Of a DNA stretch of 64,000 nucleotides, positions 30,570 through 60,158 are shown one piece after another (the first letter of the stretch is position 1; every line of letters begins with the position of its first letter). The stretch comes from Zancudomyces culisetae HAW-14-8 (lineage: Eukaryota; Fungi; Kickxellomycota). Where the stretch lies: the NCBI GenBank assembly GCA_052426225.1, contig JBNJNM010000013.1:1736001-1800000 (forward strand). Direction: 5' to 3'. The translations under genes and the position numbers were made by a program. The notes below the pieces were generated by a model, which saw nothing but the letters and a program-made list of their open reading frames with translations, had not been told where the DNA came from and did not search any database.

Positions 30570-32808
30570 CTAACCAGAGTTTTTCAACAATTCACCAACC
30601 TTTGCTAAAACCTTATCCAGGTCATCTTTTTCCATTTCGTCAATCTGTTCAGGTTTGATGGTTCTTTTGATTTTTGTTTGTAGAAAGTCAATTACTCCTG
30701 CCAACAAAACACCAAACAGTGAAACCAAAAACATCATCGTGACACAAAAGTATATAATCGAGCTTTCCGATCTGTATACAATGTTTCCGTACCCTAAAAT
30801 AGCAAATAGATACAGTTAGGATTTACATCTCCCAGGAAGTGCGTCTATTAGCGATTTGAAAGCAAGAGAACAAAAAATAAAAAACTTACCTATTGTCGAG
30901 TACGAAACAAAGCTCAGCCAAAGTATCTCGGAGTACGACATCGTATTTCCTCTTAAGAAATGAAACACGAAAATGAGTACAAAGCAGAAAAGCGTGTAGA
31001 TAACCATCAAGAAATAAACCCGTAAAGTAAACCTAGGCGAGTTTTTGAGTTCTTCGATATTTTTCTCGATATTTTCGCGCTTAATAAAGACATCTCTTGG
31101 AGCTACACCGCCACTAGTGCTCTGAGTTTGTGAATCCAACTCAGGAGTAAACCGTTTTTCAATGTTTCCGCTGCTACTGCTAGTGCTACTGCTACTATTG
31201 ATTTTATCCCCCCATTCCTCATCAACACCTCGTTGAAAGTATCTCTTGGAATTGACATCTCTATTTGATTGAAAAAACAGTGGATCCATATTCATACCAG
31301 CATTACCATCATGGGTCGTGGATACATGCAGTCCATTTTTCCCAAACTCCAGCGCGAACCTGAAATCATTTGTTCTACTCAAAAACTGTCTCAACTCTTT
31401 TTTATTTTTGGAACCGTCCACAAGTAACTCTGAGGTATGAATTCGAAGTAGCAGTTGTTCCTTCAAAAGCATAGCCAACCTCTTTGTCTTCATGTTGTCC
31501 AAAACTGATAGGAGGAAGTTTGCAAAATTAACTAAATACAAGCCCATTATAGCCAAACCTATCAATGACCAAACCAGCATAACATACTGCGACAAAGAGG
31601 TTGTTGAGATTACATCTCCATATCCAATGGTTGTTATTGTTACTATTGATATAAATACTTTTTTTTAGGGGGAAGGAATTTAATACTTTGATTGTACAGA
31701 TATTATATATTAAGCTGGGGTATTTCTTTTCAAACCCTGTGAAGCAAATTACCTAAACAAAAGTAGAAGCCTATAAGCAAGGTTCTATTCTCGAGTAATG
31801 CAAATATGACCGCACCAACAATTATCCAGCCGTAAAGCAAAAGTATGCTGAAGTGTAGCAACTTTTGTTGATAAGGTAGCCCGCTGCCTATGATTTGAAT
31901 AAAACGTCGATAAAATAAATATGATTAACTGAATATGTGATTTACACGAAAGCGATACAAATACATGTAAGTACATGTAAAAACGGTTAATTATTTTTGT
32001 AAAAATTGCGATAGCTTGCCTTTGTTTCTAAAGTTTTCAGTGCGAACATAGTCATATACCAACAAGATGACCACTATCAATGATATGCAATAGCTGGCAA
32101 TAAAAAACGCAAACTCGTCTGTTATCTCCGTGTCTATCTTGTTTTGCAAATCTGATGCTACAATGTATATTGTTATCCCAAGTCCATATGCAACTATTTG
32201 CGGTATTTAGTGTGTTTTTTAATCTAGGCGGCTCTGATAAATCTTAACCATCAGATTGATCGAAATCCCAACCTTGGTACAAAAAAAAGAAGTAAAATAA
32301 ATAAGAATATAGGAATACGGTTGAATCTAGGATACCAATATATACTTTGCTTACATGCTAGGAACTGTATAACCACTGTCAGCGCGGTAGATAATATTAT
32401 CTTTACGTTGAAGGTTCTGAATGTAAATGCAATTGTTGAGGATAACACGAGCACAAATGTGGTCAGTCGAAATATAAAGTAGGCTAGCAGCATGTCATAT
32501 CTCCCATTTTCACTTTTTCCTGTACTCGAATAAGCTACACTCATACACAACATATTAAGAATCAAGTTAGTCACATTCAACAACCCCGCAACGCTAACAG
32601 ATGTACGTCTAACCGACGTAAGCTCTTCGGCCGCCTCTATATCCTTTAACGCCTCGGTTTCCCTTTTCATTGCATTCGAATTGTCCTCTTTATGAGAGGA
32701 GGGTTTCCTAAAGTTTTTAAACTTAAGCCAATTAGCATTTCGGGCACGCCGCTTGATACTAACAAGGCTAAGTGGTGGAAACAAACGTGTGTTGGTTCTA
32801 TTTTTCAT
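30570..32808 (-). CDS. TOK1: TOK-type 8-TM two-pore K+ channel, paralogue A; exons 32808-32355, 32193-32020, 31887-31753, 31642-30890, 30793-30570
   Basis: Spliced protein: four N-terminal TMs, NK-GSGLPYQQK, P1 VTITTIGYGD, P2 YSTIGYGN; intron 32019-31888 has a GC donor. Confidence 0.88.
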
Positions 32809-57397: not shown

Positions 57398-60158
57398 TCA
57401 CTTTAAAAGCTTGTTAACTTTTGATAGAATTAGCTCAATCTCGTTATCTTCAATTTGGTCGTTCGCTTCTGGCTTTATAAGCGTCTTAAGTTTTTGTTGG
57501 GTCATCTCAACAACAGCACCCACAAAGACAGCAAATATAGACACTATGAACAAAATTATTAGGCAAAAATAAATAAGTGCATACTCAGACTTGTACACAG
57601 TGTCTCCGTACCCTATTTCCAGTTACATATGCTATAATCAGTTTTCCTAGCACTTTAGTTGACTTTTAAAAAATTTTTGGTTATAAGGCTGTTACAAGGA
57701 AAAGAGTAACAAAAATTCTCGAGAGTAGTCTTTTCCTTCCACTATCCTTGGTATATAAAAAAGTAGAAAAGAAGCGACCACCCTCCATTTGCACCCTCCT
57801 CCACTTGAATATTCCTGCAAAACGTATAAAAAAAAACTAGCCAATCCTTTTCTTACCTATTGTTGTCGAGCTAACAAAACCAAACCAAAATGATCGGAAG
57901 GGTGAGAACCCCTTTTCCTCAAACACCTGAAAAAACATCACCAGTAAAACCCAAATGGCCAGACACACACCTATGAAGACCCAGACATCTGTGGTAACTC
58001 CTGACGAGTTTTTCAGAGTCTCAAGCTCCTTTTTAATTAAATTGTATTCAAGACAAACCGATTGATTGTCTTCGAATATTGTGCTAGCAACTATTGAATC
58101 TTCACCATCTATGCCGTCATAAGTATCATTATAGCTGTCTGGTGTATCAAGTATCCCATTATCAATGTCGGCATTACTTTCTATTTTTTTCATGCCCTTG
58201 ATATTTTCTAAATTTTCCTCATTCTCTGTGTACTCTGTACTTTCGGTTTCTTCAAAACTTGTTGCTGTTTCTAAATCTCTCACATTTTTTGAATACCTTA
58301 TTTTATCACTATCGCTGTCCTTCGTTTTGGTATACGACCGCCTATGCTTCTTAGGCTTAGTGCGAATTCTGTGTACAGTATTTGATTTCTTTGATTGGGA
58401 TATCGTCTTTTCTTCGTTGCAATCTATTTTGTATCCCACTTTCCTTCTCAGTTTGTTTACCTCCATCTTTTCGGTATTTATCCTGTCAATGTCCTCACGG
58501 ATTTTCAGCATTAGTCGGTCTCTCAATAATTTTGCCAATTTTTTTGCCTTTATACTTTCTAGTATTGATACTAAAAGATTAGCATAGTTTACCAGGTAGA
58601 GGCCTACGAGTACTGTTGCCCCCAATATCCACACTAGCATGATGGATTTTGAAAGAGTTGTCTTTGGTACGTGATCTCCATACCCGATTGACGTGGCGCT
58701 TACTATATTTAATAATTAATATTTTCGGGTTAGTTTAGTTCAAGGATAGTATTATCCCTCAACGTACTAAACAAAACAATCAAGTTAACACTTTATGTTT
58801 TTAATAAAATAAGAGATCGAGTACAATACAAAATTCAATTAAAGCAGTAGGATATAAAGTAATCAAAAAGTCATACCGAGGCAGTAATAAACTCCGATCA
58901 GGAAAGTTTCCTTCTCAAGATATTTAAATATTACACCACCAACCATCACCCAGGTATACAACAGGATAATGCTAAACTGCCACATTTTTTGCTGGTATGA
59001 TATACCGCTGCCTATGTTTTTTTTTTAGAAAGATAATTGTTAACATTGGTAGTCCGGATGAATATGTTAATATTGATTGTGTTGTTTCGGATTGATATCT
59101 TACCTTTGTTTCTAAAATTTTTTGTTTTAGTGTAGTCGTACAATAACAACACAAAAACTATAAATGAAAACATGTAACTGACCACAAAATATGTAAATGC
59201 GCCACTGTACTGCGTTTCTTTTTGGTTATTGCGATTTAAAGTGAATATGTATAGCGTTACACCCATTCCGTATGCAACTATTTATAAACAGTTATAAGTT
59301 TAATAAGACACAGAAAACCATGTCATAGTTGGTAATATACAAAACCACTTTTATCCAACATTATTCAAGCTACTAATACCAGTTTCCTGAAAAATTCATG
59401 TTTCAAGTATTAACTGTTTGCATCCAAAAAGAAAATTGTACACCTCACTTACATGTTAAAAATTCAAAGAATATTGTGAGGAATGTCGAAGTAACTATAC
59501 GAATGTTTAAGGTTCGTATTGAAAACGTAATAAATGGCAGTATATTGAGAACGAACATAATGATCCGAACGGGAAGTTTTGCTATTTACAATTACAAGAG
59601 AGTGTGTTTACATCCAAGAAAACAAAGTAATGGGCTGCAATAAGCATACCCGTAAAAGATTAATCATATAGACCAAAAATTAATGAAATTAGAATAGAGA
59701 ATTAAGACTTACCTAGGAACAACTCGTAACCCTCTAAATATAAACAAGCACGCTTCAGTGAATAAATAAAAAATAGGCAATTGCATGTATTTGATTACGA
59801 GAAAATATATCAGTTCATACAAAAAAAAAAATTATAAGGCAGACGTACTCTCATAATAGTGTTTTTGCTCAAGATTATAATCGACTAGAGAAAGTGATAC
59901 CATACCAAGTATTGCATTTGTCATGATTATCAGCCCGGATATACCTACAGAAAACCTTTTTACAGCAATCCGCTTTTTTGCCGATTCGAGTTGGTAGATC
60001 TCATTTTGTCTTTCTTTTAATTTCTTTTTGGTGTTTTCTTGCTTTTTTCTAAAAAAGAAAGCTTTGCCAAAAGTCCTCAGCCCTTGTGAATCAAGGGGGA
60101 GTTTGGATCTGAAAGAAATGCTTTTGGATATTTTTATAAATTCTTCGTCTTCCGGCAT
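57398..60158 (-). CDS. TOK1: TOK-type two-pore K+ channel, paralogue D; exons 60158-59849, 59733-59713, 59581-59453, 59277-59104, 59011-58877, 58702-57857, 57612-57398
   Basis: NK-GSGISYQQK; P1 VSATSIGYGD, P2 STTIGYGD; 21-nt micro-exon (KGYELFL); C-terminal IKPE..LSKVNKLLK shared with A and B. Confidence 0.88.

Follow-up and report, generated by a model that had tools for sequence, protein, structure and literature searches.

Why does a gut-bound fungus keep a cluster of diverged potassium channel genes, and what could their altered pores be good for? This question is raised by a stretch of 64,000 nucleotides (nt) from Zancudomyces culisetae HAW-14-8 (contig JBNJNM010000013.1, positions 1,736,001 to 1,800,000), referred to here as the window, in which we modelled four genes, A to D, for putative TOK-type K+ channel subunits with eight transmembrane (TM) segments and two pore loops (P1 and P2). 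An earlier reading of the letters of this DNA, hereafter the original prediction, had described such a set of genes and proposed that their products could sense K+ and pH in the gut. The extrusion of sporangiospores in Z. culisetae needs K+ and a pH shift, as later papers cite from Horn 1989; this need has been on record since 1989, and no molecule has been tied to trichospore discharge. We consider it likely, though well short of certain, that A–D are four functional paralogues of the TOK family, and that the duplications occurred on the Zancudomyces side once it had diverged from the Smittium and Furculomyces lines sampled. The locus offers a handful of candidate channel genes, intact and under constraint, in the very species concerned.

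Family membership and architecture

The species can be read from the window itself. Immediately upstream of gene A, an open reading frame codes for 2-amino-3-ketobutyrate CoA ligase (KBL); its product is 100% identical over 440 amino acids (aa) to a Z. culisetae protein, with the next-best matches, from Mycoemilia and Smittium, at 63–67%. The large exon of gene B is 97% identical to a deposited Z. culisetae fragment (AX774_g5809). The sensing proposal presupposed a gut fungus of this kind, and the KBL match shows that the premise holds.

Splice models were built by three-frame reading and enumeration of splice sites. All four had intact frames and canonical splice sites, save for a GC-AG intron 2 in A, and they bear out the original description of four intact, eight-TM, two-pore genes broken up by introns. 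The eight filter motifs had all been read exactly, and the spacing was also as described, with A, B, and C within 9.5 kb and the 5' end of D lying 17.3 kb past the 5' end of C. A tblastn search with all paralogues found no further TOK-like sequence in the window.

Judged by their sequences, A–D belong to the TOK family. The Pfam profile Ion_trans_2 matched every pore exon (twice in B), and the closest solved chains by sequence were Saccharomyces cerevisiae TOK1 and Candida albicans TOK (CaTOK; E ~1e-11), ahead of K2P channels. An alignment of the six paralogues found in the genome (A–D and genes E and F, described below) gave a hydropathy profile with eight hydrophobic segments (S1–S8) and two P-loops. 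The K+ channel signature T-x-G-[YFL]-G was present in seven of the eight filters of A–D, the exception being P1 of B (TAIGNSD).

Like S. cerevisiae TOK1 (PDB 45io/45il) and CaTOK (PDB 9pik), the predicted proteins combine an S1–S4 bundle with two pore modules to give eight TM segments and two P-loops, carry the S4–S5 motif L..D...T..F...GSG, and nest among the TOKs of other fungi in trees; A, C, and D have a P1 filter of the type G-F/Y-G-D together with a G-Y-G-D-type P2. Unlike those two channels, their pore modules are only 20–30% identical to the characterised ones, and their S6–S7 loops are very long and disordered (104–153 aa). In place of the large, structured C-terminal bundle that CaTOK has in the cytosol (PMC13323377), they have a C-terminal tail of ~45 aa with one helix. 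Z. culisetae also differs in having six genes instead of the usual one to three, in the P1 of B, and in the P2 external-ring residues N, K, and E.

Among Harpellales, the 8-TM TOKs of Smittium culicis ('TOK1', OMJ30247.1), S. angustum (PWA01906.1), Furculomyces (PVU85795.1), and S. mucronatum (OLY85654.1) share one clade with A–D (100/99) and align with them over their full length at E values of 1e-30 to 1e-45. They are 22–34% identical to A–D, lie outside the A–D clade, and all have G-F-G-D and G-Y-G-D filters.

An AlphaFold model of exon 3 of B had a mean predicted local distance difference test score (pLDDT) of 77, with 86–96 in the pore modules. The modelled order was S5, pore helix 1, S6, a disordered loop, a pre-S7 helix, S7, pore helix 2, S8, and a C-terminal helix; the S6 helix extends ~45 residues into the cytosol, and residues 138–210 of the exon 3 model, within the loop, had pLDDT values below 50. 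The model superposed over both pore modules on animal K2P subunits (TWIK, TASK, TREK, THIK) with Z scores of 12–15, the best being TWIK-2 (15.0), TASK3 (13.6), and TASK2 (13.4). A Foldseek search of a PDB copy seemingly older than the TOK structures returned only single pore domains or K2P channels. However, K2P subunits have four TM segments and an extracellular cap, while A–D have four extra N-terminal helices, a short S5–P1 linker, and no cap.

For the N-terminal part, the S4 exon of B aligns to the S4–S5 motif that is common to the TOKs of Dikarya, Kickxellales, and Harpellales. In hhalign, a profile of the Harpellales N-terminal exon matched a Dikarya TOK S1–S4 profile with a probability of 85% (E 6.6e-6, 122 columns). 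Sequence searches of the PDB with the N-terminal profile and with exon 2 of B gave chance matches only. A full-length model of a Furculomyces relative had eight TM helices with pLDDT 83–97. With moderate confidence, we regard the predicted S1–S4 region as homologous to that of characterised TOKs, which is the TALC domain of CaTOK.

The original prediction had also held that the S6–S7 loops are largely unalignable while their flanks and the C-terminal helix are conserved. The loops of A–D could indeed not be aligned between paralogues. The post-S6 helix, the pre-S7 helix, and the C-terminal helix around them are conserved in A, B, and D; for C the claim stands less well, its conservation being weaker.

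Copy number, origin, and maintenance of the paralogues

An Ion_trans_2 profile search of the whole genome (27.09 Mb, 25 contigs) recovered the four window genes and four other loci. Gene E (contig C11, ~4371002-4372781) encodes 429 aa with the filters TVGYGD and TIGYGD, and gene F (contig C6, ~858834-861288) encodes 493 aa with the filters TTIGFGD and TTIGYGD. A copy of E on contig C17 differs at 5 of 3192 nt and is probably assembly redundancy or a very recent duplicate. The family of four that was first described therefore holds for the window, but the genome contains at least six TOK-type genes. Gene F has an additional intron inside S7. Two genes for Kv-like K+ channels with six TM segments and a single pore (filter TTGYGD) were also seen, at C16:10594-13758 and C9:1303622-1306900; Kv-like 6-TM channels are rare in fungi.

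The relationships of the copies were examined in a maximum-likelihood tree of 29 rows (LG+C20+F+G4 by PMSF), and an overview tree was also built. All Harpellales TOK sequences grouped together (100/99), with the Kickxellales (100/99) as their sister clade. Within the Harpellales group, A–D formed one clade (100/99) in which B and D were sisters (97/97), with terminal branch lengths of 0.66 and 0.74, respectively. Gene E joined A–D with weaker support (93/94), and gene F and one S. megazygosporum gene branched in no settled order at the base. Eight Smittium and Furculomyces proteins grouped apart from A–D, and no Smittium orthologue was found inside the A–D clade in the 29-row tree.

An exhaustive profile search of 1.84 billion representatives yielded 2194 matches, of which only two, both Z. 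culisetae proteins, fell below 1e-30; the third-best stood at 1e-25. The nearest clusters came from Smittium angustum, S. simulii, S. megazygosporum, S. culicis, S. mucronatum, and Furculomyces, with Coemansia, Kickxella, and Mycoemilia next; among the Smittium proteins the deposited name 'Outward-rectifier potassium channel TOK1' occurs. A word-index protein search returned only the Z. culisetae protein for the B exon and 21 proteins for the family alignment.

The A-B-C tandem sits between the KBL gene and an RNB-domain gene. In S. simulii (MBFR01000391.1), KBL and RNB are adjacent and convergent, and a tblastn search of the 10 kb to each side of them gave no TOK gene; the KBL locus of S. mucronatum also has no TOK gene. 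At window positions 28805-45582, KBL and RNB have the same orientation and are separated by 11 kb that hold the TOK cluster, so the insertion was accompanied by an inversion. At four Smittium places, which represent three genes because one occurs on two contigs, the TOK genes stand alone. Together with the S. simulii KBL/RNB locus, this points either to an event in the Zancudomyces lineage that gave rise to the tandem cluster or to a loss in Smittium.

Deposited proteomes suggest two TOKs in Coemansia spiralis, one cluster each in Kickxella and Mycoemilia, and about two to three distinct types per Smittium species, against six genes in Z. culisetae. In these proteomes, free-living Kickxellales show fewer copies, not the equal expansion that the original prediction had considered. 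Several genes per genome are also found in Dikarya, with two to three in Aspergillus and three in Hebeloma cylindrosporum. Unlike those families, the Z. culisetae set comprises six genes, of which four appear to stem from one lineage-specific burst, three are in tandem, and one has a degenerate filter.

Whether the copies are maintained could be judged from a second strain, COL-18-3. The window is collinear with the COL-18-3 contig LSSK01001088.1 (98.4% nt identity over 19.8 kb) and with a second contig, LSSK01001659.1 (98.7%), and the two contigs are 99.5% identical to each other. That this short-read assembly carries the region twice suggests heterozygosity, with two haplotypes, or a very recent segmental duplication. 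In COL-18-3, genes A, B, and C have intact frames and an identical splice structure, and C differs by one 6-nt indel.

We compared nonsynonymous and synonymous differences (pN/pS) between the strains for A, B, and C, each split into the core and the S6–S7 loop. The pooled cores had 6.5 nonsynonymous and 25.5 synonymous changes, giving a pN/pS of 0.07 (binomial p = 2e-12 vs neutrality), with 0.05 in A, 0.10 in B, and 0.05 in C. The pooled loops had 24 nonsynonymous and 8 synonymous changes (pN/pS 0.80), which is indistinguishable from neutral. The low core values indicate purifying selection that maintains the clustered genes A, B, and C, with their loops nearly free to vary. Positive selection on the loop of A was considered, with 12 nonsynonymous changes against 1 synonymous, and the changes were too few for the claim.

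On balance, we hold to the reading of A–D as four functional paralogues of Zancudomyces origin, and several points weigh against it. The splice models are derived from homology and splice signals only; among them, the S1–S2 linker of C (288-nt intron 1) is uncertain, as are, outside the window, the first exons at the 5' ends of E and F. The pN/pS analysis covers A, B, and C but not D. The copy numbers of relatives come from deposited, fragmentary proteomes and not from genome searches.

Pore variation and candidate roles

The filters were compared across 41 fungal TOK-like proteins, six from Z. culisetae and 35 from other fungi. Except in B, P1 has the form G-[FYL]-G with D or N (once Y) as the next residue; the aligned P2s have G-[YF]-G with D or E (once V) in that place, save for N in A and K in B. 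The P1 of B, the Lys after the P2 of B, and the Asn after the P2 of A are each unique among the 41, and the P1 of C, TTTGFGD, has one parallel. In the P1 of B, GNS stands in place of G-Y/F/L-G, and Ala in place of the Thr or Ser that precedes I/V-G in nearly all relatives. The Lys of its P2 occupies the external-ring position, where nearly all relatives have Asp or Glu. The filter codons of B are identical in HAW-14-8 and COL-18-3.

In TASK channels, the residue after G-Y-G is a pH sensor. In TOK1, the residue after G-x-G alters gating and K+ dependence, according to the D292N result cited in PMC3410928. TOK filters are atypical in that they pass both Na+ and K+ and gate at the K+ equilibrium potential (E_K; PMC13323377), and CaTOK is regulated by external pH via H144, V462, and S466 (PMC11667011). 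Since the paralogues differ at the filter and at the residue after G-x-G of P2 (N, K, E, or D), they probably differ functionally; A–D would then probably vary in K+ dependence and selectivity, and perhaps in pH response. The P1 of B, which would supply two of the four filter strands, presumably cannot form canonical outer K+ sites. Instead of a classical K+ channel, B would then probably be a modulatory subunit or a cation pore of poor selectivity. The GNS filter and the external-ring N, K, and E are natural variants for TOK biophysics, a field in which structures are only recent.

By analogy with TOK1 and K2P channels, A–D subunits would assemble as dimers in which four P-loops line one pore, presumably gated by voltage relative to E_K. 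A homodimer prediction with the pore exon of B scored 0.15 against a mark of 0.32, a value that we count neither for nor against dimers. That TOK channels are dimers, a premise of the original prediction, agrees with PMC13323377, and heteromerisation was earlier proposed as a source of TOK diversity (PMC3410928, PMC6651076). Each subunit would consist of the S1–S4 bundle, the S4–S5 motif, two pore modules, a long S6 helix, the disordered fast-evolving loop, and the pre-S7 helix, and in A, B, and D the short conserved C-terminal helix would complete it. The most likely task of such channels would be to control membrane potential, turgor, and K+ flux as K+ and pH change in the larval gut.

A more specific role was put forward by the original prediction, in which homo- and heterodimers would sense gut K+ and pH in combination; we weigh it here as a sensor that sets off the extrusion of sporangiospores from trichospores. 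Such a sensor is a plausible idea. The species is the right one, the trigger is K+ plus a pH shift, and the extrusion sequence lasts less than 90 s (PMC13062954), a time scale that suits channel-driven osmotic work. TOK gating follows E_K and hence external K+ (PMC13323377), CaTOK responds to pH (PMC11667011), pore and external-ring residues vary among the paralogues, and the expansion exceeds that of free-living kin. However, Smittium also needs K+ and a pH shift, yet it has no orthologues inside the A–D clade, which excludes A–D as a trigger shared by both; that role is open, at most, to the Harpellales TOK clade as a whole. The CaTOK residues H144, V462, and S466 have no demonstrated equivalents here. 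We regard a trigger built from A–D as unlikely. The literature searched contained no earlier account of the Z. culisetae TOK family, and it mentioned potassium in Harpellales only via citations of Horn 1989.

The genomic context of potassium transport suggests another role. In six-frame profile searches of the whole genome, made on one assembly, we found no TRK transporter (PF02386 none; TIGR00934 best 14.6 bits) and no HAK/KUP transporter (PF02705, TIGR00794). The same method recovered a Na+/H+ exchanger (204 bits) and many P-type ATPases, among them one type-IID ENA/ACU-like ATPase at C10:233742-236600 (938 bits). Since each of 15 endophytic fungal genomes in a published survey had one TRK or more (PMC6651076), the apparent absence of TRK here is notable, and the lack of both TRK and HAK, if confirmed, would be unusual for a fungus. 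In gut-bound Z. culisetae, a large share of the K+ traffic might run through channels. After a loss of TRK and HAK, some TOK paralogues or the two Kv-like channels might even be the main K+ entry in the K+-rich gut, a reading also favoured by the six TOK-like and two Kv-like genes. However, TOK channels are outward rectifiers by definition, the type-IID ATPase could be an ACU-type K+ pump, and the absence was judged from profile searches of one assembly; we consider this route of entry unlikely. A bolder version, which we rate as a long shot, joins the two ideas: TRK and HAK were lost, the TOKs expanded, and some paralogues with altered filter-gate residues (B, and A with its P2 Asn) would pass K+ or other cations inward and drive a K+- and pH-dependent, seconds-scale swelling and discharge of sporangiospores in the gut.

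Plant two-pore TPK channels are mostly vacuolar. By analogy, the paralogues might be vacuolar or endomembrane K+ channels of different compartments, with sorting signals held in their paralogue-specific cytosolic loops and N-terminal tails. Characterised TOKs, however, sit in the plasma membrane (PMC3410928), and we think an organellar location very improbable.

Least credible is the view that some copies, B above all, are non-functional or decaying tandem duplicates, which could be read from the unique P1 and P2 of B and from deposited annotations that give the genes as fragments only, but which we reject on selection and branch length: the frame and splice sites of B are intact in two strains, its core is constrained, and the canonical sister D has a branch at least as long.

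Gene structures and neighbouring genes

All introns of A–D are in phase 1. Genes A, C, and D share intron positions before S4, between the K and the GSG of the conserved motif, before P1, and inside P2 between TI and GYG. Gene B has lost the two 3' introns of this set (before P1 and inside P2). The GC-AG donor of intron 2 in A (31888-32019, -), AAAG/GCAAGC with the slash at the exon border, is identical in COL-18-3, and the single GT alternative would remove the conserved GSG motif.

Gene D contains a 21-nt microexon (59713-59733, -), preceded by TTTAG and followed by GTAAGT, which encodes GYELFL of the S1–S2 linker and matches GFHLFL in B. It splits a former 267-nt first intron into two introns of ordinary size, 115 and 131 nt. 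A scan of the 288-nt intron 1 of C for such a microexon gave nothing fitting.

The deposited models for A, B, and C in COL-18-3 are fragments or missing. The deposited gene models at the TOK loci are fragmentary and need correcting; the structures modelled here are listed in Table 1.

Table 1. Predicted TOK-type genes of the window, with their selectivity filters and S6–S7 loops (window coordinates)
Feature	Position	Strand	Description
Gene A	30570-32808	-	TOK-type subunit, 579 aa, 5 exons: 32355-32808, 32020-32193, 31753-31887, 30890-31642, 30570-30793 (stop included)
Gene A, P1 filter	31614-31634	-	TTIGYGD
Gene A, P2 filter		-	STIGYGN, split by intron 4
Gene A, S6–S7 loop	31071-31436	-	cytosolic, aa 324-445
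Gene B	35332-37246	+	TOK-type subunit, 569 aa, 3 exons: 35332-35800, 35902-36075, 36180-37246
Gene B, P1 filter	36323-36343	+	TAIGNSD
Gene B, P2 filter	37016-37036	+	STIGFGK
Gene B, S6–S7 loop	36521-36844		cytosolic
Gene C	37572-40067	-	TOK-type subunit, 593 aa, 6 exons: 39647-40067, 39230-39358, 38936-39109, 38692-38826, 37905-38603, 37572-37795
Gene C, P1 filter	38575-38595	-	TTTGFGD
Gene C, P2 filter		-	STVGYGE, split by intron 5
Gene C, S6–S7 loop	38086-38397		cytosolic
Gene D	57398-60158	-	TOK-type subunit, 609 aa, 7 exons: 59849-60158, 59713-59733, 59453-59581, 59104-59277, 58877-59011, 57857-58702, 57398-57612
Gene D, P1 filter	58674-58694	-	TSIGYGD
Gene D, P2 filter		-	TTIGYGD, split by intron 6
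Gene D, S6–S7 loop	58038-58496		cytosolic

Between C and D lie ordinary genes, namely the RNB-domain gene, a DUF726 gene, a MON1-like gene, and an acetyl-CoA transporter gene.

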